Source of the DNA: Octopus sinensis
Taxonomy: Eukaryota
Assembly: GCF_006345805.1 (NCBI RefSeq)
Contig: NC_043000.1
Coordinates: 132,804,001 to 132,868,000, forward strand
Direction of reading: 5' to 3'
DNA: 64,000 nt
In this document: in pieces, positions 4,331-59,775 of the stretch
How the letters are laid out: each line of letters opens with the position of its first letter
Numbering within the stretch: the first letter of the stretch is position 1
Notes under the pieces: model-generated
Told to the model about the DNA's origin: nothing
What the model saw: the letters and a program-made list of their open reading frames with translations, nothing else
The model's database searches: none
Position numbers and translations under genes: made by a program

Positions 4331-5275
4331 TCAGTAGCCGGGAAAGAATACATAATAAAACATGGACAGTAGCAAAGTGTGTGTGTGTGTGTGCATATTG
4401 GTGCTGGTACCACAATATGTCCACACTAAGTCTTAGAAGTCAGCAATTGAAAGTTAAATCTAGCCAGCCTAGATATGTGAGAAACAAGTAACACATTACT
4501 ATATACAATGTGTAGAACTGAGAGCAGGAAGAGGTAAAAGCAATGATTACACACACATACAATGTTATGCAGTATAGAAGCTTGAAACATAAGTTATAGA
4601 GAGAGAGCCTTCAGTGTTCCATATACCATCATTAAAAAGAATTATAGAGAGAAAGCCTTCAATGTTTCATACATCATCATTAAAAAAACCTATCTGGGTT
4701 GATTTCCTTTAAATTCACTCATTCACTCAACAGTGATAAAACAGGTACCAGTAATATACTGGAGTATTTCCTTACAAAATGTAGTTTTGTATATAGAGAA
4801 TTAATGGTACAGACATAAATGTGCGTTTTTGTGTGTGAAAATGAGGAGGAGGGAAAAGTAGGAAGAGTTAGGGTCAGGGGTTAGGGCTCATGGCTGTTAG
4901 TTTATGTTTGTGATTGTACATATATAATGGCATCTGTAAATAAATTAGTGATTTATTTATAAATATAGCGTTTCATTCAAAAGCCTGTTACCTTTCTTCT
5001 GTTTCAAGGACAGGACCCCTTTCTTTCATTAAATACATTTATACAACTTAGACACCCACGGATATTTTCAAGCATGCATGAATATATACACAAATAAATA
5101 CACGTGACCACATATGCATACACAGGCACACATAGTTAGACAGATACATTCCTACACTTTGGTGCATACATCTAATGAAAGAAGTCCATAAACCTATAGA
5201 GGTGTATTACTATGTACATACATTCAGTAATATACATATACAATTTCATATATGAAATGAATAAACACATATTTT

Positions 5276-5482
5276 CTATTTCTTTACTACCCACAGAGAG
5301 GACAGACAAACAGATTAAGTTGATTATATCGACCCCAGTGTGTAACAGGTACTTATTTAATCGACCCCGAAAGGATGAAAGGCAAAGTCGACCTCGGCGG
5401 AATTTGAACTCAGAACGCAACGGCAGACGAAATACGGCTACGCATTTCGCCCGGCGTGCTAACGTTTCTGCCAGCTCACCGC
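5276..5482 (-). mobile_element. SINE family C (head GGCGGCGAGCTGGCAGAA), tail C1
   Basis: Core GCCTTTCATCCTTTCGGGGTCGATTAAATAAGTACC shared with more than 12 copies in the window. Confidence 0.85.
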
Positions 5483-7204
5483 TGAATAAACACATATTTT
5501 CAGACATACACACATGTACACATTATTATTCTTTAGATTTATTTATTTCACTAAGTCTAGTAAACAGAAGCAAACATCCTTTACAAAAATACTTGCTTTT
5601 GTTTCCAATCAAAAGTACTCATTAATGGGTGAATCAGAGCCGTAATTTCAGAGGAGAGATGAAATGGAGATTGTAACATTCTTACTTTTCCTAAAGGATA
5701 CTAAAGAAGTAAGCATAGCGAAGGGGATAACAAGTTTGCTTTACAACTACATGGTTCCTGTTTCAATCCCACTCTACAGCATGTTGGGCAAGAGTTTTTT
5801 TTTTTTTGTTTTTTTAAGCTGTATCCTCAGGTTGAACAGTACCTTGTGAGAAAAATTTGGGAGATGGAAACTGTGTGAAAACCTGCTCTGTGTGTGTGTG
5901 TGTGTGTGGGGGGTATCTCTTTATGTAAAAAAGATAGCCACTTAAAAAAAAGAGATTGGTAAAATAACTACCATCCTGGAATAATGATCAACTAAAATCC
6001 TTGAACCTGGAGCCAAGTCTTGAACACAAGTCTGGTGCTTTAAACCACTACGACTAAGCAAAATAAAAAAATTAAAGGTTTCCTTGATAAAATTAGTTAC
6101 CAACTTGAAATCTGACACACAGACAAAATTGTATATATATATATTTATATATATATATATATGATTGATTTTATGTCAAGTTATATATATGAAAACAATT
6201 TAACATTAAGCTGAAGAATTACTCAATACTTTTTAGTAGAATACATATTTATTGAACTCTTACAAAAAGAGGAGTGACAGTGACCTCAAAGTTTCACCCT
6301 GTCTACCCTCACCAGACAAGCAGGCTTAAACTTCAGTTATTGTTACGCCTCTTTTTATAAAAGTTCAATATATACATACATACATATATAATTATATATA
6401 TATATATCATCAGCATCAGCATCATCCTTTAACATCCATTTTCCATGATGGCATGGGTTGGATGGTTTGACCAGAGCTGGCAAGCTGCACGAGGTTCCAG
6501 CCTGATTTGGGTTGGTTTCTATAGCTTGATGCCCTTCCTAATGCCAACCACTTTACAGTGTGAGCAGGGTGCTTATATACATAAGATAAAAGACAGAGAC
6601 AGAGAAATGACTATAGAATGTTGCTTTACATTCATTTTCCATAGTATTAGAAATACATATATATATATATGTGTGTGTGTGTATATGAGAGAAAGAGAGA
6701 GATAAATATAGAATGGTGTTTTACATTCATTTTCCACACTATTAGATTTTTGTCTGACCAGTTGTTTGTTTCTACAGTTAAAACAGTCAACCGTGAAACA
6801 GCCAGTAGAACATAATGGAGTATAGAATTAAGTACCTTGATTAAGAGTAAATCAGATTTATTATTTCATTAATCTTCCAATCAAGCATGCAGTACTCCAG
6901 AACCTTCAACTCAAACATATATTTTATAAAGAATGCTAAAAATATTATCAGTAGTTAAAGAATGCTACATTTTAGCTGCTTTTAAAAAGAATATTTATAA
7001 CTTACTGGTGTGTGACCATCATCACAAAATGTTCCAAAGCAACAGTTTGAGTTAGAAGCAAAACATGTATCTTAGTTTTTCTTGACCATGTACTATTTTT
7101 AAGATGTTTGAGTTGTCTGTTATAGACAAAGGTTTTGAATGAACTCAACTGTTTTTGCATATTTTGATTGTTTTAAGCAAGTAAAAAAAAATCTATAAAA
7201 TAAT

Positions 7205-7625: not shown

Positions 7626-10025
7626 CCAGCTTTCTACTTTAATGTAACAACAATAATACCTTGTTGATTGTTAGATGCTAATTGATATATCACCTGTCTC
7701 TGTCTGCCTCACTATAATGTAGAATTTTGAATGTCTTTCTTTTTGAAAGTTTGCATTTTTGTATAGAGTTGATCAACTACTAGAACCATATTGTAGAAAT
7801 TAAGTTTTTTGTAAGTTATGATAGCAACTAATTTAAAAAAAAAAAAAATTAAATAGACAGTATCTTTGAGAAAAAGGAAACATAAGCATTAATATCTCCT
7901 ATTTTTTAAACCAATAACAAATGGTTATTCCTCAATGGCTGTCTCTGATAACAAAAAAAAAAAAAATGTGGGCAATTACATAAATTAATGACTTAAATTA
8001 ATTTCAATGAAACAGAAGGATTAATATTTAAAAAATTTTCTCCATATCTTGATTTATTTTAATCATAAAAATAAAAGTAAATCAACAAAAATAATCACCC
8101 AATGATATTTTTTTGCCAGGAAGGACTTCAAACTATGGACTTTGTTCTTTCTGTAATGTTACAATATAGAAGGAAAAATATAATGGGTTTAAGCTGTTAT
8201 GCCACCAATAATGTCTAAGAGTGCTACAAGTAGAGCCATCATAAAGCATGGGCATACTGGGTAGGTTACTTGGAGGCCTCACAGATCTAAGGGTCCAATG
8301 TTAAGCATATATATTGTGGTTTGCTCACACTCAATAAATAGTATAGACCAGGTTTCTGCTTTGCCTAAGGGCCTATAGACTTCAAAATTGACAGGATAAA
8401 AGTATACTTCTAAATGTTTTAAGAAAATATGGAGTTATGATACTAGAGACTATGATGTTTGACTTGAGAGGGTTATGGTCAGTGAGGGGAAGACTGAAAG
8501 ACTAGTCGAAAGTATATGCCGAAATTGAATCAAAGACCTTAATTAAAACAAGGCAAAGAAAACTAGAATAACACCAACAACTCCTATTTCTATTTACTGA
8601 AAATTTATCTGAACAAAGGAGTGGTGCTCCGTTTTATATCACACTTGCCACACAAACATACATTAAACACCTGATAACTTAGTATTTTTTTGAAACTCAG
8701 TAATATTGTTGCTTGTTTTGTACTTTTTTTTTATATGATTTATATACCAGATATGTATTAACTTTCTTCACCTGGTACTTCCAATAAATTAAAACATTAT
8801 GGTTTTAACATTTGGACTTTGGTGTGTATGTGTATGTATGTGGGGGGCGGGGGAAGAAAGAGAGAATTTTGAAGTGTGCGTGTATTAATGTTAAGGCTTA
8901 AAGTAGCATAACAACGATATCATTGTCTTGAGTAATTTGGTTGTACCGAAACAGGGATGAGCACCAAAACCCTACGAAAATAGGTATAAATCAAATTTTA
9001 AGGAGAAGATTTAAATTTGGGATTGGGGTTTGTGGAGGAGGACTAGGTTGACTTAGTAAAGTAATTTTGATTTGCTTTCCTGTATTTATTTGCTAAAATT
9101 CATTGATTGGTTCCATGCAAAAATTTTGCACCCAAGGAGTTTCTTTAAAGCAAAGCACATGACGTTTGTATAGACATATCTAATTTTCATTCACCGAGAT
9201 TTCAAGTGTATCCCATGGATTCTCACAGAATTATGTATGTACGTATGCATGCAAATATGTATTAATGTAAGTGTGCATAAGTATCTGTATATTGTAATAT
9301 GTTTATGTATGTTGGTATATTATTATATATATATATATACATCGATGTACTTATTTATTGAAGCATGTATGCATATAAATATGTATGCTTCAGAAGTGTG
9401 TATGTTTGTGTTTTTGTGTGAGTGTGTGCATGCAGAAATGCATGTGTATTCGTTCTTATATATATATATATATATCATGAAAATATCTTCCACATCATAT
9501 TTTTTTAGTATAAATCAATAGACTAACCAGAAAAGACATTTTCACACTTATCAAACGTATATCAAGGTTTTTAAAATTCATCATCATATTTGGTATTTCA
9601 CATGAATATTACTAAGTATATTTAGATATACTACTTAGATAAATCCTTTGTAGTAGTGTCAGTGTGGTTTAGCCGATGTATGTATGTATAGTGTATTGGT
9701 GTTGTGTCATGTATGCAGATAAATCCCATATATCATTTCAAAATATCTCATAGATCATATATATATCACATGTACTTAAGACATAATTGGTAAATCCCAT
9801 ACCTCATCAGGGATGTATCATTTACATCACATCACATAAATATATCTGTGAATACAAAGTAAATATTTTTCGAAATTAAAAAAAAATATGATTGTTCCTT
9901 GAGTGTTTTTGCACATTTATAAAAGTCTCTTTTATCTTCTTCCATTTGAATTTCCATTCCTCATCTATTCATCTTGTTTTTTTTTTTTTTTTAAATTTCT
10001 GTACTGTTTTGTTATTCGAAAGTAT

Positions 10026-11152
10026 TTAAGATCTGGAACACACAAGAGGTGGGGGCTGAACATATTCTGGTTTGAATTGTAAATAGTCCAAAAGTTTTTG
10101 AGGTAATGGCAGACGAGGAATCATCTCTGGAGAAAAGTATTGTAAAATTCTTGTACGGCAACGGTTCTGAAGGTTACCTTTGTTGGGAAGCTTGTAAACA
10201 TGGATATGATCTGTCGAAGAATCTGGCACATTAAGAACCAGGGCCATGCGATCACCACAGTTAGAAAAAACAGGCATAAAATTAACAGGACATGAATGCA
10301 GACCACATATAAATCTAATATACTGAATACAATATAGTGTTTGTGAAGTATCTCCGTCAAATACGTAAACAGCCATTGTAAGGGCATTATATTTGCGACT
10401 TTTTTTCTCACGACAAAAACAGCCACCTGTCATCATTATTGCAAATATCAGCAAGCCGTCTTTTGAGTACACCAGGTTTTTCAATTTCAGTCGCTGCATA
10501 TCACGGAAAACATCAATTTGTGTGTTGAATGACACGGTTTCCCAGATGTCTGTTCGAACTAGACTAAGTGAGTTATCTTCATCTCGTCTGAAGCTGGTTA
10601 CAGCAAGACGGAGGTTTCCAAATCTAGGATCAAATGCAAATAATGAGTGACTGTAAGGTAAACTAACTTCACTAATCAGCTGTTTGGTTTTAATGTTGTA
10701 AAGCTGAAAGACAGATGCGCTGTTGTCTCCACGGAGATTTGGAAATTTAATCAAACATGTTGAGTCGTCAGAACTCAGTTCACCCCATAAAGCTTCATTC
10801 ACAAATTCCACATTCTGTTTACCGAAATGTCCAAGAAATTTATTAATACTCAAATCTATGACTCCAAATTGAGTCATCATATTCTGTACAAGATGAAGGA
10901 TGACTAAGTTGTCATGGTAACATAATACACTTTTGACATGGAAATTTTGAATCGAAGACAACTGGGCAGGAATATGGTTGTACTCGAAATGTTCTGCCAT
11001 TTTGATAAATTTGCTTCTGCGTCGAAAACTGAAAAACGAGTTACTTTTGTTTATATCAATGATCCCTTGTCGACTTGTGCAGAAAGCGGGACTACAGTCC
11101 TTAAAAACCAAGCCATCACATGTTAGAAGGGAGTCACCAAAACCAGTGGCTT
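10026..11152 (-). CDS. SOCS-box protein, last coding exon (beta-rich, propeller-like body plus C-terminal SOCS box)
   Basis: Long non-repetitive ORF; C-terminus LPNKGNLQNRCRTRILQYFSPEMIPRLPLPQKLLDYLQF = BC box (LxxxCxxxI) plus LPLP cullin box; acceptor TCTATTTCAG|AA at 11152 (phase 1), so the ORF-track start at 11171 is probably intronic. Confidence 0.9.
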
Positions 11153-11354
11153 CTGAAATAGACATAAACATTAAACTTCCATTAATAACTTTAAATTATA
11201 TTTCAAAGGAAAACAAAAATTCATTATACAATAAAAAGAGAAACTGAAAAAATAAATGTTTCTTTCACATAATATGTAATGAAAAAACATATAATATGTG
11301 AAACACTATACAAAAGACATGCAATAATAATAATAATAATAATGATAAACCTTT

Positions 11355-11738
11355 CCACTATTGGCACAAGACCTGAAATTTTGTGGGAGGGGGCCTAGCT
11401 GATTACATTTGGCCCCAGTAATTGACTGGTACTTATTTCATTGACCCTGAAAAGATGAAAATCAAATCCAACCTTGACAGAATCTGAATTGAGAATGAAA
11501 AACCTATTTCTTTACTACCCACAAGAGGCTAAACACAGAGAGGACAAACAAGGACAGACAAACGGATTAAGTTGATTATATCGACCCCAGTGCATAACTG
11601 GTACTTATTTAATCGACCCCGAAAGGATGAAAGGCAAAGTTGACCTCGGCAGAATTTGAACTCAGAACGCAACGGCAGACGAAATACCACTAAGCATTTC
11701 ACCTGGCATGCTAATGGTTCTGCCAGTTTGCCACCTTA
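11355..11738 (-). mobile_element. Two tandem SINE family C copies (tails C2 and C1)
   Basis: Two cores in succession with different tails. Confidence 0.75.
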
Positions 11739-11884
11739 ATGATGATGGTGCTGGTATGAGTGATGATGATGATGATGATGATGAAGCTTGATAGTAGGTC
11801 TGCTCAATCAGTGCCTGACCTTGGGCTAAACAATAACAACAAACAAACAAACAAAACTGAATTACTACCACAAAGAAGCCTTCA

Positions 11885-12130
11885 ATCATTTCGTATTTGA
11901 AGTCTAGTATTCTCAGGTCTGATCAAACTCCCACCTACCAACTCTCCCTCAATCTACCATTTTTATGGGAGACTATCACCCTCAAATCTCATCTACTTTT
12001 TGCTTAATAAACTCTATTCTCTCACAATCACATGTTTAAACTTGTGTAGTCCTCTCTTCTGCACACATTTCATTAATCTCTTAGTAACCAACCTTTGTTT
12101 TACACAAACACACTCCAATGGTCCTGGCAG
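11885..12130 (-). mobile_element. Highly degenerate RTE LINE 3' fragment
   Basis: Minus-strand CVQKRGLHKFKHV... resembles VQERRLRWYGHV; many stops. Confidence 0.35.
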
Positions 12131-12427
12131 TGTCTAGTAGAGAGAGCCACTGTGGACTCAGTGAATGGTCAGTCTTTTAACTCACAGGAAGTGGCTTGAG
12201 TGCCAATAGATTTATAGTTACATAAGAGAGTGAGATAGTAAAACACTAACTCTCGTCATTAAGTTTGGGTGAACTGTAGTATATTGTGCTAATTAATATA
12301 AATTAATAAAAAAAAACAGGAGCCTTTATGTGGTTGCTTGATCTGCTAGAAATAGCAGCCAAATTTCCCAAAAATCATACCTAACCATCATGGGGTATGT
12401 AGAACAGCGGATAATGTAACCATATTA

Positions 12428-12816
12428 GGTGCAACGAGTGGCTGTGTGGTATGTAGCTTGCTTACCAACCACATGGTTCCGGGTTCAGTCCCACTGCGTG
12501 GCATCTTGGGCAAGTGTCTTCTACTAAAGCCTCAGGCCGACCAAAGCCTTGTGAGTGGATTTGGTAGAGGGAAACTGAAAGAAGCCTGTCGTATATATGT
12601 GTATATATATGTGTGTGTGTGTTTGTGTTTGTCCCCCCAACATTGCTTGACAACCGATGCTGGTGTGTTTACATCCCCGTAACTTAGCGGTTTGGCAAAA
12701 GAGACCGATAGAATAAGTACTAGGCTTATGAAGAATAAGTCCTGGGGTCGATTTGCTTGACTAAAGGTGGTGCTTCAGCATGGTCACAGTCAAATGACTG
12801 AAACAAGTAAAAGAGT
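12428..12816 (+). mobile_element. SINE family A
   Basis: Full-length head-to-tail match to the other copies. Confidence 0.9.
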
Positions 12817-13688
12817 GTATATACCCCACAAAAGACAGGATGGTTATGATCAAAATGCTTTTAATCATAGGTCAATAGCTATAATGACCAATGAAGGCAC
12901 ATCTATATGTTTCTGCAATCTGCTAGAAACAACCATCAAATCTTCCTCAAATCATATCCAACGAAAAATGTAAGTTTATATTGGCTTGTACACTATAATT
13001 TAACAAAGAAAGGCTGGTTATGGCTGGAATGTCTTTGATCATTCTGTGACTAACTTGACTTTCAAACGGCAACGGCAACATCTACAACTTAATTTACAAC
13101 TAAACATACCAGGTCATGTCAAGTTAAGAGATTTTTTTTTTCCAGAGACAGTATATTATGAGTATCATGATAGAGACCATTAAGCCTTAAGTTGATAAGC
13201 AGGCCTCTTATCAACACACACAGTTATCTGTGAGTCTCTTGAGATCAGTAATCTTCCAGTATATTAATTATATCATCATATCAGCTCTTATAACACTGAT
13301 TATCAAAATATTTCTCATTCACTATTTTCCTGTCACTTCAACCTACCCTGTTGCATTAGCAAAAAAAGTCAGGTCACAAAACAACTATAAGTGATTATAA
13401 TAAAAGTTTCAAAATGGTAATAAGAACAAACACAATAACCCTATAGGAATGCCTTTGGAATTCCTAATCTGCTCATCACACATCCACTGATACTATAGTA
13501 ACACATACTTCAAAGGAATCATTATCTTGGAATTTTAATTCTATGATATACATATAAGGAAGGTGTTTTCTGTTTTCCTGGAGACTGCTATCATGGCAGG
13601 GAGGGAGGGAGGGAGAGAGAGAGAGAGAGAGGGGTTCTGTGCTTAAAGGGAGAGAATCACTTCTAAGTTTTTTTCTCTTTAGTTTTAA

Positions 13689-13904
13689 CCCTTTAGCAAT
13701 CAGGTTACTCTGTCTAATGTAATGCTTATTCACATTGCTTTGAATTGATCATCCATTATCTCATAGCTTTGCGAATCGAACGACATGTCAGTTTATTTTT
13801 AAAATGACATTGTAGGGTAGGTTAGAGAGACTGGATCTGGTTAGTTTGAACATAAAACAGGTAGAATATTTTGGCAGGATATGGCCAGTTTGAATGCTTA
13901 AGAG
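13689..13904. mobile_element. piggyBac-type MITE (TTAACCCTTTAGCA family)
   Basis: TTAA|CCCTTTAGCA ... degenerate TGCTTAAGAG|CCAA; related copies at 18290-18420 and 30899-31446. Confidence 0.6.
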
Positions 13905-14065
13905 CCAACCAAGACAGAAAGTTTTTTTCCCTTTTTTTGGAGGGTGAAAAATGGCTGTGTACAGAAAGAGGATCAATGTTTTTTGTTATGACCTTTATAT
14001 TATAAACTGAATATGCTAAAACAAAATAACACTGAAAGGAACAATTTGACACTACATCTTTATAT

Positions 14066-14420
14066 AGGTGTAGGAGTGGCTGTGTGGTAAGTAGCTTGCT
14101 TATGAACCACATGGTTCCGGGTTCAGTCCCACTGCATGGCACCTTGGGCAAGTGTCTTTTACTATAGTGTCGAGCAGATCAAAGCCTTGTGAATGGATTT
14201 GGTAGACGGAAACTGAAAGAAGCCTGTCATATATATATATATGTATGTGTGTGTATATGTTTGTGTGTGTGTTTATCCCCGTAACTTAGCGGGTCAGCAA
14301 AAGAGTCCAATAGAATAAGTACTAGGTTTACAAAGAATAAGTCCTGGGGTTGATTTGTTTGACTAAAAGGTGGTGCTCCAGCATGGCCACAGTCACACGA
14401 CTGAAACAAGTAAAAGAGTA
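14066..14420 (+). mobile_element. SINE family A
   Basis: Head-to-tail match with a small internal deletion. Confidence 0.9.
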
Positions 14421-14958
14421 AATAAATATACTGCATCTTTAACCCTTTCATAACCACATTTCATATAAAATACATAACCGCTGTTTAAATTAATTTTGAA
14501 AATAATCAAGTATTTGGAGGGATTTAGTAAAACAAGTTTTGCATTATTAAGTTAGCGTTAGGCACAAAACAAAAAGACTGCTACATAAAATTTTCTGATG
14601 TAAGGTTTTAATTTAAATATGAGATTAAAATTTTGGTTTCAGGCAGGTTGGCATCAAAAGGGAATAAAATAGAAAAGAGAACAAAATATCTTGTCTGTTT
14701 TTTGGTTTGTTTGTTTATAAATTCGTTCATCTTGATTTCGTGGTTTGATCCTTGTGTGTTCGTTATGCAGACATGCATAATCTTTAATCAGTCATGCATC
14801 TTGTATGTAATTACATTCATATCATTCATTCACTGTGCTGTTATCCCTCTGGCTTTCTGCAGCTGCTTGATATATTTATTAGATTAAGTGTGTTTCTTAT
14901 AAGGAATTATTTTATCTCTAGGAACTCTCACAAATATATATATATATATATATATATA

Positions 14959-15140
14959 TTGATAGAAATGATAAGACAACAAAAGAATGAAAAAGACCTC
15001 GATATTATGTAAATAGAGGAATTTATCTGTAAATATAATATCCAATGGCCGGATAACTGAAGAGATGGTGGCATGGATTTCCGCCCCGACATCCGAAACT
15101 CGGAGTTTTATCATGGCTACCGAATAATTGTCACATATTT
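14959..15140. mobile_element. Penelope-like pseudo-LTR remnant, head-to-head inverted, embedded in (TA)n
   Basis: 14959-15032 is the reverse complement of 16515-16592; 15045-15140 is a direct copy of 16420-16510; contains a hammerhead fold. Confidence 0.7.
15052..15112 (+). ncRNA. Minimal type-I hammerhead ribozyme fold (HH1)
   Basis: GAUAA-CUGAAGA-GAUG..CAUC-C-GAA-ACUC(G)GAGU-U-UUAUC: stem I GAUAA/UUAUC, stem II GAUG/CAUC, self-complementary stem III, GUU cleavage triplet. Confidence 0.75.
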
Positions 15141-15152
15141 TATATATATATA

Positions 15153-15569
15153 CTCTTTACTCTTTTACTTGTTTCAGTCATTTGACTGCGGCCATGCTGG
15201 AGCACCGCCTTTAATCGAGCAACTCGACCCCGGGACTTATTCTTTTGTAAGCCCAGTACTTATTCTATCAGTCTCTTTTTGCCGAACCGCTAAGTGACGG
15301 GGACATAAACACACCAGCATCGGTTGTCAAGCAATGCTAGGGGGACAAACACAGACACACAAACATACACACAAACATACACACACATATATATATACAT
15401 ATATACGACAGGCTTCTTTCAGTTTCCGTCTACCAAATCCACTCACAAGGCTTTGGTCGGCCCGAGGCTATAGCAGAAGACACTTGCCCAAGATACCATG
15501 CAGTGGGACTGAACCCGGAAGCATGTGGTTGATAAGCAAGCTACTTACCACACAGCCACTCCTGCACCT
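15153..15569 (-). mobile_element. SINE family A
   Basis: Full-length, well-conserved reverse-strand copy. Confidence 0.9.
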
Positions 15570-15809
15570 ATATATATATATTTATAATAAAAAAAAAATG
15601 AAGAAAAAACACAAGAAAAAAACAACAATGTGATGACATGGTACATGCACAGTATTAATAGATTCTCAGGGAAGGAAAGAAAAGTAGTTTTACAGTTCAA
15701 GCATAGCACTTCTTCAGAAACAAGAGACAGAGGACAGACCAAGAGAAAACGAAGACAGAGGGGGAAAAAAAAATCACCAACGATCCACATGTAGTTACAT
15801 TTTGAAAAT

Positions 15810-15960
15810 GTATATATATATATATATACATACACACACACACATATATATATATATATAGATAGATAGATAGATAGATAGATAGACTGAAATATATAGA
15901 TTGATAGATAAATAGATATAGATATATATATATATATATATACATATATGTATGTGTGTG
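15810..15960. repeat. Compound (TA)n/(CA)n/(GATA)n microsatellite
   Basis: Seen directly. Confidence 0.95.
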
Positions 15961-16306
15961 TTATTATTTAAGACAGTTTGATTTGGTTCCACGTGACCAT
16001 AAAGTTTTGCAGGCTTTTTACTGAAAGGTAGCTCATTCAAGCTCAGATTACCGATTGTTGAAGATGGTTAGTGGAAAATGGGGTGCTATTGGTCAAGGTA
16101 GGTCACAAGTGAGATTGGTATTTCAATGACACCAGATGCATTAGAAGGGAGGATTAGACCACATAGCTGGACAGGTAGCTGGTGGCACCTTGGTGTCTGG
16201 CAGGCCTTTGAAGGAGCTTGGTAGCCAATAGAAGTTAGACTGTTAAGAGGGTGTGTGTATATATATATATATATATCTGTAAATGTGACAATTATTCGGT
16301 AGCCAT

Positions 16307-16359
16307 GATAAAACTCCAAGTTTCGGATGTTAGGGTGGAAATCCATCTCATCAGTTATC
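16307..16359 (-). ncRNA. Minimal type-I hammerhead ribozyme fold (HH2), sense to the SOCS-gene pre-mRNA
   Basis: GAUAA-CUGAUGA-GAUG(14-nt loop)CAUC-C-GAA-ACUU(G)GAGU-U-UUAUC. Confidence 0.75.
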
Positions 16360-16425
16360 CGGCCATCGGAAAAAATGTTATGAAAATGACCCTTTTCATT
16401 TTCATAGCATTTTTTCCGATGGCCA

Positions 16426-16486
16426 GATAACTGAAGAGATGGCGGTGTGGATTTCCACCCTGACAACCGAAACTCAGAGTTTTATC
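16426..16486 (+). ncRNA. Minimal type-I hammerhead ribozyme fold (HH3)
   Basis: GAUAA-CUGAAGA-GAUG..CAAC-C-GAA-ACUC(A)GAGU-U-UUAUC; one stem II mismatch. Confidence 0.65.
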
Positions 16487-16646
16487 CTGGCTACTGAATA
16501 ATTGTCACATATTACAGTTACAGATAAATTCCTCTATTTGCATAATATCGAGGTCTTTTCATTCTTTTATTGTCTTACCATTTCTATCAATATATTACAT
16601 ATATACATACATACATGTATATATATATATATATAAGATGTATGAG

Positions 16647-17500
16647 TGCATGTATATATTGTGTTAAACAGATTTCGGGGGCGGGGGGATCAAGAAGTTT
16701 ATTGAATTGAACAGCAACTTCCTTTTCTATTAAGAATGTGGTCAGCTGTGTATATATATTGTGTTAAATGCATTTTAAGGCTGGTCAACAATTTTATTGA
16801 AAGGGCTTGGAAGGAATAATATTTTCTTCTTTGTGCTGTGTGTGTGTGTTTCGTTTTTTGGGAATATTTTGTTTTGTCTTTTGGGAATTTGTTGTTTTAT
16901 TGGCAGCAATAAAATGCTGTTTTTGCCGAGCAGAAACGCTCTTTGGATAAGTATGTTCTTCAGTTCATCCAGTTTTTTCATGCTGAGATGGACCTGATAC
17001 TATTGTACATATTCACTTAGTCTTTTCGGTGACATGATGTGAACAAAAGATACTGCTTGGAGTCAGTGGGTTTATAGAATATGTCCATTTCTATTTTCTC
17101 AACCTAAGCAACAACATCCAATTCACAATGGATTTTAACCCCAAGGAACTTGCCTTTCTAGATATCTTAGTTGTAAACACAGATGGAAAAGAATTTTACT
17201 ATTCATTTCAATAAAAAAAACACACATACAAAACAACATATTCTCAAAAAACAAAGTGCGCGCGTGCACACACACACACACACACATACACACAGATGCA
17301 CACCACAAAGCAAAGAGAAAATAATTCCTTCCAAACCCTTTCAATAAAATTGCTGACCAGCCTTTAAATCCATTTAACACAATATATACACACAACTGAC
17401 CATATTCTCAATAAGAAAGGAACTTGCCAATCAATTATAATAAAATTCTTGACCCCCCAATGATGCAAGTATATATTTAACACAATATATACATGCAGCT
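16647..17500. mobile_element. Head-to-head pair of Penelope-like element ORF fragments (RT C-terminus/thumb)
   Basis: Plus 17095-17214 reads FLNLSNNIQFTMDFNPKELAFLDILVV; minus 17086-16900 reads DIFYKPTDSKQYLLFTSCH...LDELKNILIQR; flanking ~220-bp arms (16647-16880 vs 17240-17495) are diverged inverted repeats. Confidence 0.8.
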
Positions 17501-17643
17501 GACCATTTTCTGAATAAAAAAGAAAGATAAAATGTTTTGACACAAAAAAATTCCTTTCACAAAACAATACATACACAGCACAGAGCTGGCCATATCCTGA
17601 ACATAAATTTGCTATTCAAATCAAAAGAATTCTTTTCAATATA

Positions 17644-18033
17644 GGCGTAGGAGTGGCTGTGTGGTAAGTAGCTTGCTTAACAACCACATAGTTCTAGGTT
17701 CAGTCCCATTGCGTGGCACCTTGGGCAAGTGTCTTCTACTGTAACCTCAGGCCGACCAAAGCCTTGTGAGTGGATTTGGCTGATGGAAACTGAAAGAAGC
17801 TCGTTGTGTATGTGTATATATATGTGTGTGTGTGTCTGTGTTTGTCCCCCCCCCCAACATCGCTTGACAACCAATGGTGGTGTGTTTACATTCCCGTAAT
17901 TTAGTGGTTCGGCAAAAGAGACTGATAGAATAAGTACTAGGCTTACAAAGAATAAGTCCTGGGGTCAATTTGCTCGACTAAAGGCGGTGCTCCAGCATGG
18001 CCACAGTCAAATGACTGAAACAAGTAAAAGAGT
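17644..18033 (+). mobile_element. SINE family A
   Basis: Full-length match. Confidence 0.9.
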
Positions 18034-19843
18034 GATTCAATAGAATTCCTCACACTTGACTCCTAGACCCCCATTCCAGTACCCTACATAGATAACATAT
18101 ATAAGAAGAGACTCTAAGATGAAATTTCACTCATGTTCTGAACTATGCACAAAATATAACAATAAAATGTTCTTAATTTCTAATTTTTTCTTATTTACAA
18201 AATTTTTATATTGATATGATGGACATACACATGAAAATTGGTAATATTTTATAAAAGTCACTCAATGTAAGAAATATGCAAAAAATCTTTAACCATTTAG
18301 CATTTAAGACAGTCATCTCTGGTCCAAATGTTCTACCCTGTCTTATGTTCAAACCAGCCAGATCTGGCCTTTCACACCTACCCTACAATGACATTCTAAA
18401 AATAAACAATCACATTCAAGTGATGCTGTGGAAGGACTGTTAGGGTAATAATAATGGTACAAGAAACTTAGAAAAGAATCAACATGTAAGAGTTGCTTTA
18501 GATGTTGTCACAAATATTTAAGTGTGTAACAGCTGGTTCCTCCCAAATTTGTTAATGACACTTTAATGTGAAGTGTAAAATCTTCCCTGGTTTAGAGACA
18601 ACAGCTGTTCAGAGACGAAGTAGTTTCTGTTACAAAGTGAAGCCTTAACTTTGAGATGAAATTTTGATTCCTTGATAAATACAAGGCAACAATGAGATGT
18701 CATCAGTCATTGAGTTGTCTAGCAAATATGAAGACAACGGTGATAGTTCTAGTTTATGTGTTGTTGAGAAAAAAAGGAGTGTATGATAATGTAAGTGTAT
18801 TTCCAAGTGATATGTAGTAACTATTTTGATTTTGTTAAAGGATGTCATTGTTGTATACTAAATAGAAGATTTTTGTTAAAGGATGTCATTGCTGTATGCT
18901 CATTGGAAGATTTTTATAATTGCTGTATACTCATTGGAACATATGAGTATATGTGTAGAGTGTCTATCTAGACTGTAGTTGGATGAGAGATAAGTGCCAA
19001 AATGTTATCAAGGAGTCAAATGTGATATCATCTTCATAATGTTATGCTTGTTTAGCAATACTGGTTAAGTGATGTAGAGAAGGAGGAGTATGGGGAACAT
19101 AATAAAACTCTGGAAAAGAACAGAGATAATAGGATGTGTTGTAATAGGATAATAGGATGTGTTGACATACATGCAATGAAACGGTCTGAGAGGAAACTAT
19201 CAATCCTAGATAACAAAGACAAGTTGTTAACCTGACCTGTGATCAAAAACACTTCAACTATGACCATCTTTATTTTCAGGCTACTTCTTTTCTATGCATC
19301 TTTCAGTTTTCTTTGTCTTTTTTTTTAAAAGATGGCAAAGTATAATTTGAGAGAAATTTGTTGATGTATCTAGCAGGTCAAGCAACCATGCACAGGTTCC
19401 TTTCTTGGTTTAATGAGACATAGATGGGCAAGTTTATTGGGAGGTTCTTATGCTTGACAATGCTCCTTTAGGCAGAAGTTTACAAGAACAAAAAACAAGA
19501 CAAACGGTATTTGATGTAGGGTTGTAGAAATCATACAAATGGTCACTATAGTGTAAAATATGTGGCCTTTTGTGATGGCTGCAGCTACCATTTTTTGAGA
19601 TTATGGTATTTGGTCAAATGAATATGGTAATGAAGTACCTAATAATGGGTCTTGCAATTCAAACTTGCTGCTTATAATTCGATGTACATATGGATTATCA
19701 ACCTACCTCAATTCAAGCATAGATATTGGATTGATCCTCTAAATACCAGCCTTTAAAATCTTTGCAAGATTTATAAGACATTTATAATAACCCCACCATA
19801 CACACTCTGTGATTCTCTCTGTAAAATTTAAATTACTTGTTAC

Positions 19844-19991
19844 CTGCATGTCCACATTTCCACTGTTCTAGTGAGCACTGATGTAACAGCGCCCATGGCT
19901 GTGCTTGTTCTGCCATCCTCCTCATGTTCCCGACAACAGCACTGGCTCCCATCAAGTCATATCTACCAGCTTTGCTTTCATCAGCTCCCAT
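19844..19991 (-). CDS. SOCS-box protein, upstream coding exon (whole exon 20049-19844; likely start MGADESK at 19991)
   Basis: Strong acceptor TTTGTTTATTTCTTCTTTAG|A and donor CAG|GTAACA; the only fully open frame ends in phase 1, and G+AA gives GAA in frame with exon 11152; ATG context AGAATGG. Confidence 0.7.
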
Positions 19992-20557
19992 TCTGAGCTG
20001 ACCTCCACGTTGATGCTGTCGATGGCGATCACGGGCCCACTTCTCGCGTCTAAAGAAGAAATAAACAAAAAGAAACAAAATATAAAATCGTGAAATCATA
20101 ATCATTCTTTGCTAACAGTCTTATGAACATTATATAATAAATATATCTTAATGAAGGACATTAGCAATATGTCTAAAACAAAATAGCTGCAATTAAATGT
20201 TGGAATCAGGTGTTAGACTACTTTGATACTACATGTATGACACAGGAAATTATTTTCTTTTCAAAGCTTATTGTGTTGCCAGCCATCATTACTCCTAAAT
20301 AATGACCTAAGTTATATCAGTTTCAGATTTTGGCACAAAGCCAGCAGCTTCAAGGAAGAGGCCAAGTCGACCCCCACTACTCAGTTAATACTTATTTTAT
20401 TGATTCTGAAAGGATGAAAGGAAAAGTTGACCTTGGTGGCATTTGAACTCAGAACATAAGGACAGACAAAATGCTTAGCAGCATTTTGTCCAGCATGTCA
20501 ACAATTCTGTTGCCTTCTTAGTTATATTATTATATTAGTTATATTATTATATATAGA

Positions 20558-22784: not shown

Positions 22785-24274
22785 TATATACCAAGAGAAA
22801 ATTAAATAAATATTGGGTGGTAGACTTAACTTTAACCCTTCACCCAGTTTAACATCACTACCCACCTAGCTCCATGAGTGTCTTTAGATAAGTCTACCCT
22901 TTACAAGTATTTAACTCAGGTCTTTGATTTAAGGATTCCTTCTGCCCTCCCTCCCACTAGTTTCAAAGATCCAATCAAGGATCACAGGCCTTGCCTTTAA
23001 ATAGATTTTAAAAAATGTTCTTGTATTTTGTCATTTGATAGCAACCAATAGGTTTATAGCTGAATGATGTAAAAGTCAACATAGAGGAAATATTCAGTTG
23101 CTGTTTACACCCAAGCCAGTTCTGATTGAGCAGAATTGAAGACATTCCAGCAATGACTCTCTTCCTTATTTTCCTTTTTGAGTGTTGTGGGCAGGAGAAG
23201 TGCTCTTGTGAATTACAACGGGGAACGCATTAGAGCTGGTGTTAAAAGAAAGAGTACCTTGTCTATTCTGCCAAGTGGCTGGTGAACAGGACTTTTTCAG
23301 CCTTGCCAAAAGGAAACCAACTTGTATGGTGCTGGTGCCACTAAAGAACACCACCAAGTACATTGTAAAGAGGTTGGCATTAGGAAGAGAGTTATTACGG
23401 CCATAGAAACCATAGCAAAACTAGGACATTAGAGTGAGACACAGTTCGCTAACCTGTTGAATCCTGTTCAACTGTCTAATCCATGCTAACAGGAAAAGAA
23501 AACATAAAACGACAATGATGATGACAATAACTATATTGTCTAATGTGTTCTTTATTTTTTAATAGCTGAATGAGATTTGCAGTGATTGGTGGTGCTAATT
23601 CTATATCATTGAACTCATCTATATACTTGTAACAAAGGTGGGATGACCACAGCTATAGAAACAATCAAATGATTTTCTTTTTTGCTTTTTTTTTTGTTTC
23701 CATATGCTACTTCTTTACCATTGACTTATTTGTGCAAAGCTGACTGACAAGATGATGTAATAATAACCACAACACACTCTCAAATGATAGCTCACTACCC
23801 TCTGTCTCTCTTCTAACATTACTAAAACACATACTCACTCCGCTGTACTTTTCAAAATAATTAAAATAATATTAGTCATTAAACTAATGTTATCTTTTCT
23901 TCACTAAATAAATATTTTTAATTAGATATTTTATGCATACTTCATTAAGTATGTCAACACTAACTTAATTAAAACAGTTTCTGTTCTGCTAAATGTTTAA
24001 ATTTAATGCTGCCACTCCTTCTCAGACCTTTGCCTCACTTATTTTCTTTTTTTTCATCATCTCTCAGAGTTGCATCTGCATGGATTCCTAAACTCTCCAT
24101 CCGGTAACCTGCAACTATTCAAAACTTAACATCAGATATCTCAATATAGGAAGATCTAAAAAATACCAGTCCTCCTTAAATGTTATATATTCTCTGAGAT
24201 GCAGCTGATGCTGTTTAACTTCAGGTTTGCCATTATAAAGTAGATCTATGAGCAAAGATTTTCCAGCTATGCCC

Positions 24275-25080
24275 ATGGCTGTGTGGTAAGTAGCTTGCTT
24301 ACCAACCACATGGTTCTGGGTTCTCATCCCATTGTGCGGCACCTTGGGCAAGTGTCTTCTACTATAGTCTTGGGCTGACCAAAACCTTGTAAGTGGATCT
24401 GGTAGACAGAAACTGAAAGAAGCCTGTTGAGGCAAGTGAAAATCAAAATCGATCAACATGAATGGAAATTGTAGCTGTGATACCAGTGCTGGTGGCACAT
24501 AAGAGAACCATCCGAATGTGGCCGTTGCCAGTGCCGCCCTGACTGGCTTCCATGCTGGTGGCACGTAAAAAGCACCATTCGATCGTGACCGTTGCCAGCC
24601 TCCCCTTGCCTCCGTGCCGGTGGCACGTAAAAAGCACCATCCGACTGGCCGTTTGCCAGCCTCGCCTGGCACCTGTGCCGGTGGTACGTAAAAAGCACCC
24701 GCTACACTCATGGAGTTGTTGGCGTTAGGAAGGGCATCCAGCCGTAGAAACATTGCCAGATCAGACTGGGCCTGGTGCAGCCTCCTGGCTTCCCAGACCC
24801 CAGTTGCACCGTCCAACCCATGCCAGCATGGAAAGCGGACGCTAAACGGTGATGATGATGATGATGATATATATATATATATCTGTGTATATATTTGTGT
24901 CTGTGTTTGTCCCCCCCCCCCCACCATTGCTCGACAACCGATGTCGGTGTGTTTAAATCCCCCATAACTTAGCAGTTCAGCAAAAGTGACCAATAAAATA
25001 AATACTAGGCTTTCAAAGAATAAGTCCTGAGGTTGATCTGTTTGACTAAAAGCGGTGCTCAAATGACTGAAACAAATAAA
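24275..25080 (+). mobile_element. SINE family A interrupted by a family-D element (24427-24868)
   Basis: A head 24275-24426; D body ending in a (GAT)n tail; A resumes at ~24870. Confidence 0.85.
24427..24868 (+). mobile_element. Repeat family D (SINE-like; ~65-bp internal tandem units; 3' ...GGAAAGCGGACGCTAAAC(GAT)n, RTE-type tail)
   Basis: Same 3' ~190 bp as about 10 other copies, with a variable number of upstream units. Confidence 0.8.
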
Positions 25081-25457
25081 AAATAGAAAATAATTGGTTT
25101 CAAATTTTGGCACAAGGCCAATAATTTTGGGGGAGGGTGTAAGTCAATTATATTCACTCCAGTGTTCATCTGATGTTTATTTTACTGATCCCAAAAGAAT
25201 GAAAGACAAAATCAACTATTGCAGAATTTGGCAGAAATACTGCTAAGCATTCTGTCTGGTGTGCTAATGATTCTGCCAGCTTACCAATAATAATCAGTGG
25301 CAGAAAAGCAAATTAAGCAAAAAGAAAGAAACACTTTCACAGGCAAGAGCAAAAGTTTTTTTGAAGAACTATAGATTTCCATCAAAACTTGGGGTTCAAC
25401 AAAATTTTGAGCAAAAAAGTTAAATGGAGTGAAATTATGGTTTTTTAAAAAATTATA

Positions 25458-25860
25458 GGCGCTGGAGTGGCTGTGTGGTAAGTAGCTTGCTTAACGAACC
25501 ACATGGTTCCGGGTTCAGTACCACTGTGTGGCACCTTGGGCAAGTGTCTTCTACTATAGCCTCGGGCCGACCAAAGCCTTGTGAGTGGATTTGGTAGACA
25601 GAAACTGAAAGAAGCCTGTCGTATATATATATGTATGTGTGTGTATATGTTGTGTATCTGTGTTTGTCCCCACCCCACCCAACATCGCTTGACAACCAAT
25701 GCTGGTGTATTTAGGTCCCTGTAACCTAGCGGTTCAGCAAAAGAGACCAATAGAATAAGTACTAGGCTTACAAAGAATAAGTTCTGGGGTCGATTTGATT
25801 TGACTAAAGGCGGTGCTCCAGCATGGCCACAGTCAAATGACTGAAAACAAGTAAAAGAGT
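25458..25860 (+). mobile_element. SINE family A
   Basis: Full-length match; a more degenerate copy follows at ~25917-26307. Confidence 0.9.
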
Positions 25861-29710: not shown

Positions 29711-30391
29711 ATATATATATACAAATGAATGGACAAACTAAAGCAGAGCACTCAACACATTTACTGGAAGTTACATGTATGGATCAGAACAGTTTGATTC
29801 AAATTCCATGCTACTTAAAGTTTCAAAGCTTTGAAACTTTAAATAGCATGAAATTTGGATCAAGCTGTTCTGATCCACTGCCCTGCCATGCACACACAGT
29901 GCAGGCTTGGTTGTGTGGTTAAGAAGTTCGTTTCCAATGTACATAGCATCAAGTTCAGCCCTACAGAGTAACACCTTCAGTAAATGCCTTTTACTATAAC
30001 GGATTTGGTAGATGGAAACTGAAAGAAGCCTCTGTGTGTGTGTGCATGCATATGTATCTCCTTGTCTTGACATTGTAAGTAAGCATCACTACCATACAAG
30101 TGATGTCATTCATTTCTAGCCTTCCAATCAAACATATCCAGCCAAGGGAAAATATCATTTTACTTGGAAACAGAAGAGAGTTGGTGAGAGAAAGAGTATA
30201 GAAAATAGAAAATTTATCTCAACAAATTCTATCTGAGCCATGCAAGCATGAAAAAGGAAAACATTAAAACAATGCTGGCAAGAGTAATGATGACAGCAAG
30301 GTTACAGTTGTTGTTTAGCCCTGGCTTAGCTCTGGTCAAACAGACCTATGGTTGAAAGCAATTCAAAAGTGACACTTTCATGATTTGTCCA

Positions 30392-30708
30392 TACATCATC
30401 ATCATCATTTAACGTCCGTTTTCCATGCTAGCATGGGTTGGATGGTTCGACCGGGGTCTGGGAAGCCAGGAGGCTGCACCAGGCTCCAGTCTCATCTGGC
30501 AATGTTTCTACAGCTGGATGCCCTTCCTAACGCCAACCACTCTGTGAGTGTAGTGGGTGCTTTTTATGTGCCACCGGTACAGGTGCCAGGGGAGGCTGGC
30601 AACATCCACGATCGGTTGGTGCTTTTTATGTGCCACCGGTATGGAAGCCAGTCAAGGTGGCGCTGGCATCGGCCATGTTCGGATGGTGCTTTTTACATGC
30701 CACCGGAG
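30392..30708 (-). mobile_element. Repeat family D
   Basis: (CAT)n-TTTAACGTCCG start on the plus strand, conserved body. Confidence 0.85.
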
Positions 30709-30898
30709 GATACATATGACTACATCATCAAATGTAGCTTTTCTTTTAATAAAATAGATAGCATGTGATTTGAGGAAAATTTGACTGCTGATTTTAGGAG
30801 ATCAAGAAACATTGTAGAGCTGCACTCATTGACTTAACATGGTACTAGCTGTGGTGATAGTCAGGTTGATTCATAAGTTGTCCTTTCAAGTGACTTAG

Positions 30899-33107: not shown

Positions 33108-33520
33108 AGGGCACCGTTCGAGTATGATCGTTACCAGCATCACCTTACTGGCACAATGTGCTTGTAGGGTGCCAAGAGCACCATCCGAGCGTGATTGTTG
33201 CCAGAGCAGCCAACTGGCTTCCGTACCCGTGACACGTAAAAGGGCACCATTCGAGCGTGAGCGTTACCAAGTCGCTTCACTGGCACGTGTAAAAAGATTC
33301 GAGCAAGGTCATTGCCAGTACCGCCGGACTGGCCCCCGTGCCGGTGGCACGTAAAATGCACCCACTACACTCTTGGAATGGTTGGTGTTAGGAAGGGCAT
33401 CCAGCTGTAGAAACTCTGCCAGATCAAGATTGGAGCCTGGTGCAGCCATCTGGTTCACCAGCCCTCAGTCAAAACCGTCCAACCCATGCTAGCATGGAAA
33501 GCGGACGCTAAACGATGATG
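33108..33520 (+). mobile_element. Repeat family D
   Basis: Tandem units plus the conserved 3' end and (GAT)n. Confidence 0.85.
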
Positions 33521-34019
33521 ATATTCGCGTACATCATTGCTTGTGTGGATCTGCATGTTTTGACTTATGGATGTGTACATGTACACATTTGTATGTCTAC
33601 ATGTCACTCTAAGACATTTCTTTGAGACAAGATATTACACCAAGTGCTGTTTCACATTTGTATACATATTATAATGTGCATACAAAAGCGAAACAGCACG
33701 AGCTCTAATATCTTATCTCAGATAAAAATACTGGTGTTTATTTTGGGCCGTTTCAAGTGAATACATTAATTTAATACTAGCCTGGATAATTTTCATACAA
33801 ATCAGTAAATGTTTTGTTTACAAATTTCTATCTCATCTCAGAATAATTATTTTGGGGTTTAGCTCAGAATGTGCAGGTTATTCCTCACTGAAGAGGTCAA
33901 ATCAAGTTGAAACACTATGTCTGGTGAGCCATGAGCCACTGACACTCTGAACAAATCCCTAAGCTTTTAACACACAAGTCCCTTTGAGATGAAATATTAC
34001 AGCTAGGGTCATTCGACAT

Positions 34020-37542: not shown

Positions 37543-37874
37543 TAGTGTTTCTCAACCATTTCTTTTATCTATGGACCCCTTTAACTCCTATTTTATTTGA
37601 ATGGACCCTCATAACTATTTAATGTTTAAAACATTCTATTATATTTTTATAACTAAATGACACGCAAATTCGTGAAGTGTTCCATATTTTTCTAATAATA
37701 GGTGCAGGAGTGGCTGTGTGGTAAGTAGCTTGCTTAACGAACCACATGGTTCCGGGTTCAGTCCCACTGCATGGCACCTTGGGCAAGTGTCTTCTACTAT
37801 AGCCTCGGGCCGACCAAATCCTTGTGAGTGGATTTGGTAGACGGAAACTGAAAGAAGTCCGTCATATATCTATA

Positions 37875-40544: not shown

Positions 40545-40995
40545 ATGCTAGCATGGGTTGGATGGTTTTGACTGAGGACTGGCAAGCCAGTAGGCTGCAC
40601 CAGACTCCAGTCTGATCTGGCAAAGTTTCTACAGCTGGATGCCTTTCCTAATGCGAACCACCCCAGAGTGTAGTGGGTGCTTTTTATGTGCCACTGGAAC
40701 AGGAGCCAGTCAGGTGGAACTGGCATCAACCACATTCGGATGGTGCTTTTTAACATGCCACCAGCATGGGAACCAGTTAGGGGGCACTGGTATTGACCAT
40801 GTTTGGATGGTGCTTTTTACATGCCACTGGCATGGGAGCCAGTCAGGCGGCACTGGCATCAACCATGTTCGGATGGTGCTTTTAACATGCCACCAGCATG
40901 GGAGCCATTTAGGGGCACTGGTATTGACCATGTTTGGATGGTGCTTTTTAACATGCCACCAGCATGGGGAGCCAGTCAGGCAACACTGGCATCAA
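40545..40995 (-). mobile_element. Repeat family D with five 65-67-bp tandem units (40676-40995)
   Basis: Units start GGTGCTTTT at 40676, 40742, 40809, 40875 and 40940. Confidence 0.85.
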
Positions 40996-41908
40996 ATATC
41001 GGCAAATGTAGATATTAAATGCTGCTGCAGATCTCTGCGAGTGTATGTGCATATATTATCTCTTTATATTTTCATACAAAAAACTGTAACCATATCTAAT
41101 ATGCTTATTACTGAAGTGCAAAGAGTCTGGCCGCAAAGGTTTGTGTATTAATAACTAGAATTTTTAATCCATACCTACAGTTCGTAATATTTGTATTATA
41201 GATAAAATGTGACTATTGTTGGAAGATAGGTACAAAAGAAAGAAAACGGTAAATATCATCCGTCTGCTTTGCTGAAATTAAATACAAAAGCTGAAAGGAT
41301 TTTTTTTCCTCACAGTTTTTTAAGCAGTAGTGGTAAAAATGGTGCTTGCAATAATTTATCAATGAAAAACAGGGAAGCCTGTTTTTATTCAGGAAAGCTG
41401 GGACAAGAAATATATAGAATAGGCTGAGACATTATAATGGCAGGTTGAAATTTATCACTTAAGACTATGTATTCAGTAATCTAGCCCCTTAATTTCATAG
41501 ATATTCTGTGATATTTTATGGTGCACCTGAGCACTGTATACAATAATATCATTATTATTATTTATCTTATAAACTCTTAATATTTGAAGTAATTTCATTG
41601 CTGATGTTTAAATTATTAGCTTCTGTTTCACTTAGGATATATTTTTATATCCTTTTCAAATACAATATCAGTTTATTTTATTTTACCAGGCATGTGGTTA
41701 AGAGATTTTATTTCTCAATATGCAATTTACAACGTACATATACACTGTTCCCCAAAAATGGACAACTCCCAATTAGTACTGACTGAAGGAATTAGTTTCA
41801 AATGAGTACTGAAACCAAGTTCCTTCTGCATGGCTGACTTGAAGGATAAAACCATACTTTACACTAAATTCCATCTACTCTTCAACAGGAGTTCATTTTC
41901 TCATTAAA

Positions 41909-42889: not shown

Positions 42890-43287
42890 CAGGAGTGGCT
42901 GTGTCGTAAGTAGCTTGCTAACCAACCACATGGTTCCGGGTTCAGTCCCATTGTGTGGCACCTTGGGCAAGTGTCTTCTGCTATAGCCCTGGGCTGACCA
43001 ATGCCTTGTGAGTGGATTTGGTAGACGGAAACTGAAAGAAGCCTGTCGTATATATGTATATATATATATGTATGTTTGTGTGTCTGTGTTTGTCCCCCTA
43101 GCATTGCTTGACAACCGATGCTGGTGTGTTTACGTCCCTGTCACTTAGCGGTTCGGCAAAAAGAGACTGATAGAATAAATACTGGGCTTACAAAGAATAA
43201 GTCCCGGGGTCAATTTGCACAACTAAAGGCAGTGCTCCAGCATGGCCGCAGTCAAATGACTGAAACAAGTAAAAGAGTAAAGAGTAA
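42890..43287 (+). mobile_element. SINE family A
   Basis: Full-length match. Confidence 0.9.

Positions 43288-59742: not shown

Positions 59743-59775
<33 letters not shown>

Follow-up and report, generated by a model that had tools for sequence, protein, structure and literature searches.

A spliced octopus gene for a predicted SOCS-box protein with a propeller-like body and a conserved N-myristoylation motif

The window analyzed here is a stretch of 64,000 nucleotides (nt) of the Octopus sinensis genome (contig NC_043000.1, positions 132,804,001 to 132,868,000; coordinates below count from the first letter of the window), and our subject is a spliced minus-strand gene for a predicted SOCS-box protein; all gene features given below lie on that strand. 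An internal exon of 206 nt (19844 to 20049) carries the conserved start codon and is bounded by an AG acceptor at 20050-20051 (...ttctttag/ACGC, with exon letters in capitals) and a GT donor at 19843-19842 (GCAG/gtaaca); one of its three frames is open throughout. The terminal coding exon (10026 to 11152) is preceded by an acceptor reading ...tatttcag/AAGCC and encodes residues 50 to 424 and a TAA stop (10028-10026). Between the two lies a phase-1 GT-AG intron of 8,691 nt (11153 to 19843), which holds interspersed repeats and interrupts codon 50 (Glu) as G/AA. Joined from the ATG at 19991, which has a strong Kozak context (cagaATGG, with A at -3 and G at +4), the coding sequence is 1,275 nt long and specifies 424 residues followed by TAA.

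By itself the open 68-codon frame of the internal exon is weak evidence, because by our estimate it would arise by chance in about 1% of cases per frame at 37% GC. The two-exon model is settled by other comparisons. The 424-residue product agrees at every position with isoform X3 of Octopus bimaculoides LOC106883075 in RefSeq (P0094; XP_014789466, XP_014789473, and XP_014789479); exact-protein look-ups with P0094 and P0001 gave no contigs. Six mRNA-type contigs of another cephalopod, taken from Logan assemblies (L001 to L006, 2.7 to 3.2 kb), have an uninterrupted coding sequence for a protein that is 90% identical, and the alignment of the 3.2-kb contig L001 to the window consists of exactly two blocks, which abut at the predicted junction (contig 406-610 with window 20045-19844, and contig 608-1715 with window 11155-10048). 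The exon split ...GHA/E-A-x-G-F..., and with it the position of the intron, recurs at genomic loci of two other spiralians: in L007, MGTEESK...EGHA lies at 9005-9163 ahead of a gt donor, and the body exon follows about 0.8 kb further on, behind ...gacag/AAGCGGGAGGG, and in L009, MGGEESK...EGHA lies at 5905-6066, with the body exon 3.9 kb downstream after ...taacag/AGGCC. The join between 19844 and 11152, as well as the 424-residue product proposed in an earlier sequence-only reading of this DNA, is thus confirmed. That reading was also right that a single open reading frame (ORF) call misses the N-terminus: the plain ORF (10026-11171, 381 residues) begins with MFMSIS within the intron and lacks the first 49 codons. 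The same error is shared by 57 of the 107 database proteins of the family, which are single-exon ORF calls that start just 5' of a conserved AAGF and omit the N-terminal exon. The gene model is already in RefSeq as an uncharacterized protein and hence is not new; to judge from the sequence identity, the locus is the 3' part of LOC106883075, and the gene of isoform X1 extends over 251 kb in the assembly of O. bimaculoides and over 302 kb in that of O. sinensis.

Orthologues with 40 to 69% identity are present in Mollusca (cephalopods, bivalves, gastropods, and a chiton), nemerteans (Lineus and Tubulanus), annelids (Owenia and Capitella), a brachiopod (Lingula), and flatworms (Schistosoma, Trichobilharzia, Clonorchis, Opisthorchis, Paragonimus, Calicophoron, and Macrostomum); the octopus protein is 50 to 64% identical to its bivalve, nemertean, or brachiopod orthologues. 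A second tier consists of divergent paralogues of 400 to 450 residues, in which Pfam sees the SOCS box only and which show full-length homology (hhalign probability 100%, E = 2.6e-55, 364 columns); named members come from Patella, Aplysia, Liolophura, Ridgeia, Lamellibrachia, Paralvinella, Tubulanus, and Lingula, as well as the rotifers Didymodactylos and Seison. When 1.84 billion representatives were searched exhaustively with a profile, 257 matched at E ≤ 1e-3, and every named match is spiralian among those listed and named, that is, 20 named of the best 150 of the 257, plus 109 matches in a named database. For now the family therefore reads as restricted to Spiralia, with the limitation that most matches are without a name. 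The sequence-only reading had described the family as uncharacterized and possibly mollusc-restricted: the first description holds, in that no Pfam family covers the protein body and a literature search returned nothing relevant on the locus, on myristoylated SOCS-box receptors, or on spiralian SOCS-box families, and the second is contradicted by the orthologues in nemerteans, annelids, brachiopods, and flatworms and the paralogues in rotifers.

Several features of individual lineages can be recorded here. The flatworm orthologues (P0081-P0093, P0109, P0112, and P0263-P0266) owe their length of 530 to 855 residues to long, low-complexity inserts, rich in serine, within the propeller region described below. 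Two loci per genome with close copies are seen in the argonaut Argonauta hians (P0096/P0097) and the whelk Babylonia areolata (P0007/P0013), and the gene has thus been duplicated independently in some molluscs. In L007 and L008, the orthologue's first coding exon is preceded, at a distance of about 2.3 kb, by a 625-residue reverse transcriptase ORF (Pfam RVT_1; 4791-6668 and 4792-6669, respectively). A Schistosoma mansoni gene that may be the orthologue of this species, Smp_173240, is tabulated among transcripts regulated by pairing (PMC3820750).

The SOCS box occupies residues 377 to 408 (10077 to 10172; Pfam PF07525) and is modeled by AlphaFold2 as two helices (377-388 and 401-407). Its BC box can be read directly as N-L377-Q-N-R-C381-R-T-R-I385 (L377-x3-C381-x3-I385) at the start of the first helix, and its Cul5 box as L397-P398-L399-P400 followed by QKLLDYL; LPxP is the Cul5-selecting motif. 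Among 30 aligned orthologues, L377, C381, and P398 are near-invariant and I385, L397, L399, and P400 are invariant, and the LPLP motif is retained in the paralogues. PF07525 is matched in all 30 of these orthologues at E ≤ 0.01 (best E, 2.2e-8), nine of ten paralogues score 26.7 to 43.7 bits, and precomputed annotation lists the family for many orthologues. A search of PDB sequences with the family profile aligns, weakly, with the SOCS boxes of SOCS4 (2izv) and SOCS1 (6c5x) and with nothing else. SH2, ankyrin, SPRY, Rab, and WD40 signatures are not detected by Pfam in the octopus protein even at E ≤ 10, and WD40 (PF00400) is found neither in the 30 orthologues at E ≤ 0.01 nor in the ten paralogues at E ≤ 0.001; a TnpB_IS66 match in the octopus protein (15 bits) was dismissed as chance. 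The BC box, the LPLP motif, and the lack of the usual partner domains had all been noted in the sequence-only reading, as had a propeller-like body, and the modeling described next bears this out.

The body of the protein has no match in the PDB by sequence search with either the protein or the profile. A first AlphaFold2 model, built from 30 orthologues, was mediocre, with a predicted local distance difference test score (pLDDT) of 64 and values below 50 over the N-terminal 115 residues; adding the divergent paralogues mended most of this, and the model from 73 sequences has a pLDDT of 83.1 and a predicted template modeling (TM) score of 0.84. Its elements run in the order helix (16-29), strand (35-40), helix (41-51), an ill-defined stretch (52-120), beta sheets, and the two SOCS-box helices. 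The all-beta body (residues 121 to 370; 10191 to 10940; pLDDT 88-98) comprises four 4-stranded sheets (121-162, 172-214, 221-259, and 271-329) and a partial fifth (343-370). Degenerate SPDG-like motifs mark the blades in octopus (SSDDSTCLIK, FDPRFGNLRLAV, YSKDGLLIFA, and FSNCGDRMALV), and at the family level they take a degenerate 'SPDG..LA' form (ISPDGS.CLIK, FDPRF..R.A.T, YSKDG.LIFA, and FS.CG.RMA). The N-terminal strand LLHQCS (residues 35 to 40; 19872 to 19889; pLDDT 88-95), in which the LLHQC motif and the adjacent W33 are near-invariant across orthologues, may close the last blade. Foldseek identifies the body with beta-propellers: the top PDB matches, at probability 1.0, are the DCAF1 WDR domain, Sec12, WDR91, YncE, Atg18, the clathrin N-terminal domain, and DDB1 BPB, and nearly all of the top 50 are propeller domains or propeller-containing chains. 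The body is thus confidently modeled as a WD-like beta-propeller of about 250 residues that lacks the WD40 sequence signature, and apparently has five blades rather than seven.

The segment most conserved among orthologues lies outside the modeled sheets. Residues 88 to 117 (FFSFRRRSKFIKMAEHFEYNHIPAQLSSIQ; 10950 to 11039) have a pLDDT below 50 in both models and read FSFRRRSKF.KMAEHFEYNHIPAQLSS at the family level, with F90, F92, R93, K97, K100, M101 to Y107, P111, A112, and S115 invariant; they may form an element that depends on a partner or a metal, or else a basic patch that binds membranes. Twelve Cys and His residues are invariant in the 30 orthologues (C61, C69, C74, H104, C127, H136, C294, C296, C332, H335, C337, and C348), arranged in part as C-x7-C-x4-C and CxC...CxxHxC...C patterns that the paralogues keep only partially. 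In the AlphaFold2 model, the CxC and CxxHxC groups sit in loops following strands b and d of blade 4; in WD-type propellers such loops form the top face. These patterns suggest one or two predicted zinc sites in a presumably cytosolic protein.

The start codon and the acylation motif M-G-A-D-E-S-K-A (19968 to 19991; Gly2, Ser6, and Lys7) are kept across phyla. All 50 orthologues whose sequences include the first coding exon have Met-Gly at the aligned position, and 38 begin exactly there; the other 12 have upstream extensions that are unrelated between lineages. The consensus is MG[ANGLV][DEQ]E[SN][KR], nearly all of the orthologues having Ser at position 6 and a single one having Asn, and G-A-D-E-S-K fits PROSITE PS00008 (G-{EDRKHPFYW}-x(2)-[STAGCN]-{P}). 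L007 and L009 must start at MG (MMG in L007), because an in-frame stop lies two to five codons upstream of the conserved ATG; the second ATG immediately ahead of it in L007 has a weak context. Among the distant paralogues (about 20% identical), 21 of 41 begin MG and 19 of 41 fit the PS00008 pattern at the N-terminus; several begin MGC, the dual-acylation (myristoyl-plus-palmitoyl) pattern, and in a further four, M-G-C or M-G-G comes directly after a short extension that is probably mispredicted. Only a few percent of proteins start with MG by chance, and Gly2 is thus a conserved trait of the whole superfamily, most readily explained by N-myristoylation. N-myristoylation as a trait of the family is well supported as a prediction, and the conservation of MGxxxSK, which the sequence-only reading had singled out, is borne out.

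These features suggest that the protein is a substrate receptor of a Cullin-5 RING ubiquitin ligase, myristoylated when translation starts at ATG 19991, a reading to which we assign a probability of roughly 0.6. Docking of Elongin B/C and Cul5-Rbx2 would fall to the SOCS box, and binding of the substrate to the propeller. In the X3 product, the initiator Met would be removed and Gly2 N-myristoylated, and the acylated glycine could steer the ligase to membranes, by peripheral targeting, or to a lipid-binding partner. Far-upstream first exons used in the cephalopod isoforms X1 and X2 would leave this glycine internal, giving a non-acylated form.

Observations of several kinds weigh against this reading, in whole or in part. 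At the C-terminus, the octopus protein scores only 21.0 bits against PF07525 (E = 4e-4), below the gathering cut-off of 23.5, such that membership is clear for the family and borderline for the octopus sequence itself. Together with the ligase assembly being itself a prediction, this leaves room for a SOCS box that binds Elongin B/C only, in a stabilizing or regulatory role, or that recruits Cul2, with no Cul5 ligase and the propeller as a scaffold; the conservation of L397, P398, L399, and P400 across phyla and paralogues would be difficult to account for if no Cullin were contacted, and we regard such an arrangement as unlikely. In the body, the blade count is taken from the secondary-structure pattern only, with ring closure and blade number deduced from it, and the Foldseek TM-scores are low (0.23 to 0.43). 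The best structural matches, including the DCAF1 WD40 domain, Sec12, WDR91, and Atg18 (E about 1e-7), have just 8 to 17% identity and root mean square deviations of 6 to 12 Å, and the likeness is therefore at the level of blades, not overall geometry; the pattern fits WD-like blades within a predicted non-seven-bladed ring. DCAF1 also docks Cul4 via DDB1, not via a SOCS box. At the N-terminus, the octopus protein has neither a Cys3 nor a polybasic stretch adjacent to Gly2, and thus no second membrane signal. Myristate alone gives weak, reversible membrane binding, and stable anchoring would hence need a second signal or a partner; "membrane-anchored", the term used in the sequence-only reading, is therefore an overstatement.

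The remaining points of this kind concern where translation starts in cephalopods. The frame stays open through 19 codons between the acceptor and ATG 19991 (REKWARDRHRQHQRGGQLR; 19992 to 20049), a stretch that is 5' leader in X3 and coding in X1 and X2. X3 (424 residues) has three RefSeq protein accessions, and its 90% cluster also includes the RefSeq predictions X1 (451 residues, MVAMSGFR plus REKWARD...) and X2 (449 residues, MSLLFK plus REKWARD...), each adding 25 to 27 in-frame residues, partly from the 19 open codons and otherwise from far-upstream first exons. A regular-expression search of the window for MVAMSGFR and MSLLFK did not find these exons, which lie past coordinate 64000, given the 251-kb extent of the X1 gene. 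Argonauta and two further cephalopod sequences share the peptide EKWARDRHR, and all six contigs L001 to L006 carry an in-frame upstream ATG (...MSCVAVMSGHGCEKWARDRHRQQQQQRGHPR-MGADESK). A glycine thus directly follows the initiator Met in X3 and not in X1, X2, or the longest ORF of the six contigs, and the claim of the sequence-only reading that MGADESK is terminal is correct for X3 and wrong for the other forms. The acylated form may be the minor one in the cephalopod lineage.

Carried further, these data could mean that the main cephalopod product is an extended, X1-like protein, a soluble and non-acylated receptor in which MGADESK is internal and the ancestral myristoylation has been lost or become facultative. 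The open leader frame, the existence of X1 and X2, and the upstream ATGs of the six contigs, all with a purine at -3, agree with this, as does the pattern of the extensions, which differ in length only by multiples of three across four cephalopod sequences and which have an 'MSG' near the extended start in both octopus X1 and the other cephalopod. On the opposing side, the three RefSeq accessions belong to X3; ATG 19991 has the strongest context, the upstream ATGs having T at +4; first-AUG logic is unreliable because the L001 leader has at least seven further upstream ATGs; and Met-Gly is kept in all of the cephalopod sequences. The leader also contains a 26-nt block (GAGAAGTGGGCCCGTGATCGCCATCG; 20020 to 20045) that is 100% identical to the mRNA of the other cephalopod, whereas the coding sequences of the two are 78% identical overall and 50% at third positions, with a longest identical run of 21 nt. 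No third codon position differs within the block, and this suggests that the nucleotide sequence itself, and not purely the encoded peptide, is under constraint. We consider a predominantly extended product possible and lean toward the receptor that is myristoylated when started at ATG 19991; it is plausible that octopus makes both an acylatable 424-residue form and an extended, non-acylatable one. A start-site hairpin in the 5' leader was also considered and is unsupported, RNA folding being no better than in shuffled controls (z of +0.8 to +0.95).

Among known SOCS-box proteins, the closest in plan are WSB1 and WSB2, which likewise combine a propeller with a C-terminal SOCS box (BC box and Cul5 box) in about 400 to 420 residues and share the presumed role of Elongin B/C-Cul5-Rbx2 receptor. 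This shared plan, with blades that are WD-like by Foldseek and carry degenerate 'SPDG..LA' motifs, would be expected if the gene were a fast-evolving WSB1/WSB2 orthologue and no separate family existed. However, the WD40 searches reported above were negative at all three levels (octopus protein, orthologues, and paralogues), the PDB profile search recovered SOCS boxes only, the named matches are all spiralian within the scope given above, and the model suggests five blades and not seven. The octopus family also has an N-terminal Cys cluster (C61, C69, and C74), an invariant MAEHFEYNHIP segment, and the Gly2 acylation motif, by which it differs from WSB1 and WSB2. A separate bivalve transcript with human WSB1 as its best match has been listed (PMC10869415), which is a weak lead only. 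WSB orthology is in our judgment very improbable; nothing that would place the family in WSB emerged from the Pfam, PDB-profile, and database searches or from the model.

Other SOCS-box classes are more distant. The classical SOCS, ASB, and SPSB proteins have the same C-terminal box, and the octopus protein lacks their SH2, ankyrin, or SPRY domains. The Rab40 subfamily consists of lipid-modified SOCS-box GTPases that recruit Cul5, placing a Cul5 ligase on membranes; Rab40 does so with a C-terminal prenyl group and a GTPase domain, unlike the N-terminal myristoylation motif and propeller of the octopus family. Provisionally, we place the family among the SOCS-box proteins as a class of its own, new and restricted to one lineage.

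The window also contains repeats, and no tRNA genes or Rfam families were found in its 64,000 nt. An interspersed repeat of about 128 nt is present in at least 15 copies, in both orientations and with 77 to 90% identity, throughout the introns of the gene (12463-12589, 14105-14227, 15408-15534, 17678-17806, 25494-25619, 37737-37857, 42921-43046, 45754-45877, 58065-58186, and others). A second interspersed repeat, of about 350 nt with internal tandem subunits of about 61 to 66 nt, lies at 24486-24700, 30394-30706, 33174-33522, 40545-40991, 46534-46913, 52756-53119, and 59755-60028, and it yields long spurious ORFs reading ...GAFYVPPAQVPGEAG... (e.g., 24115-25113, 30385-30768, and 40639-41151).

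A broader and more speculative picture, which we hold only tentatively and think doubtful as a whole, is that Spiralia evolved a superfamily of lipid-anchored Cullin-5 receptors of their own. Its members would combine an unusually small, five-bladed WD-like propeller with a Cys/His-rich, possibly zinc-binding module formed by the N-terminal region and the top face and with N-myristoylation, some paralogues bearing MGC, and cephalopod first exons more than 200 kb upstream would act as a switch between acylated and non-acylated forms.

The octopus locus is otherwise an ordinary, correctly predicted protein-coding gene, and its interest lies in the family to which it belongs. Classes of SOCS-box proteins are set by their substrate-binding domains (SH2, ankyrin, SPRY, WD40, Rab GTPase, and a few others), and this family would add one. 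It is old, being present in at least six spiralian phyla, as well as highly conserved and expanded into paralogues; as far as the named matches show, it is absent from the usual model animals, which may explain why it has gone unstudied. The orthologues of flatworms, Schistosoma, Clonorchis, Opisthorchis, and Paragonimus among them, would be ligase components specific to their lineage, to which the host has no close equivalent. More generally, a conserved acylation signal on a predicted Cul5 receptor suggests that these proteins may act in the ubiquitylation of membrane-associated targets.

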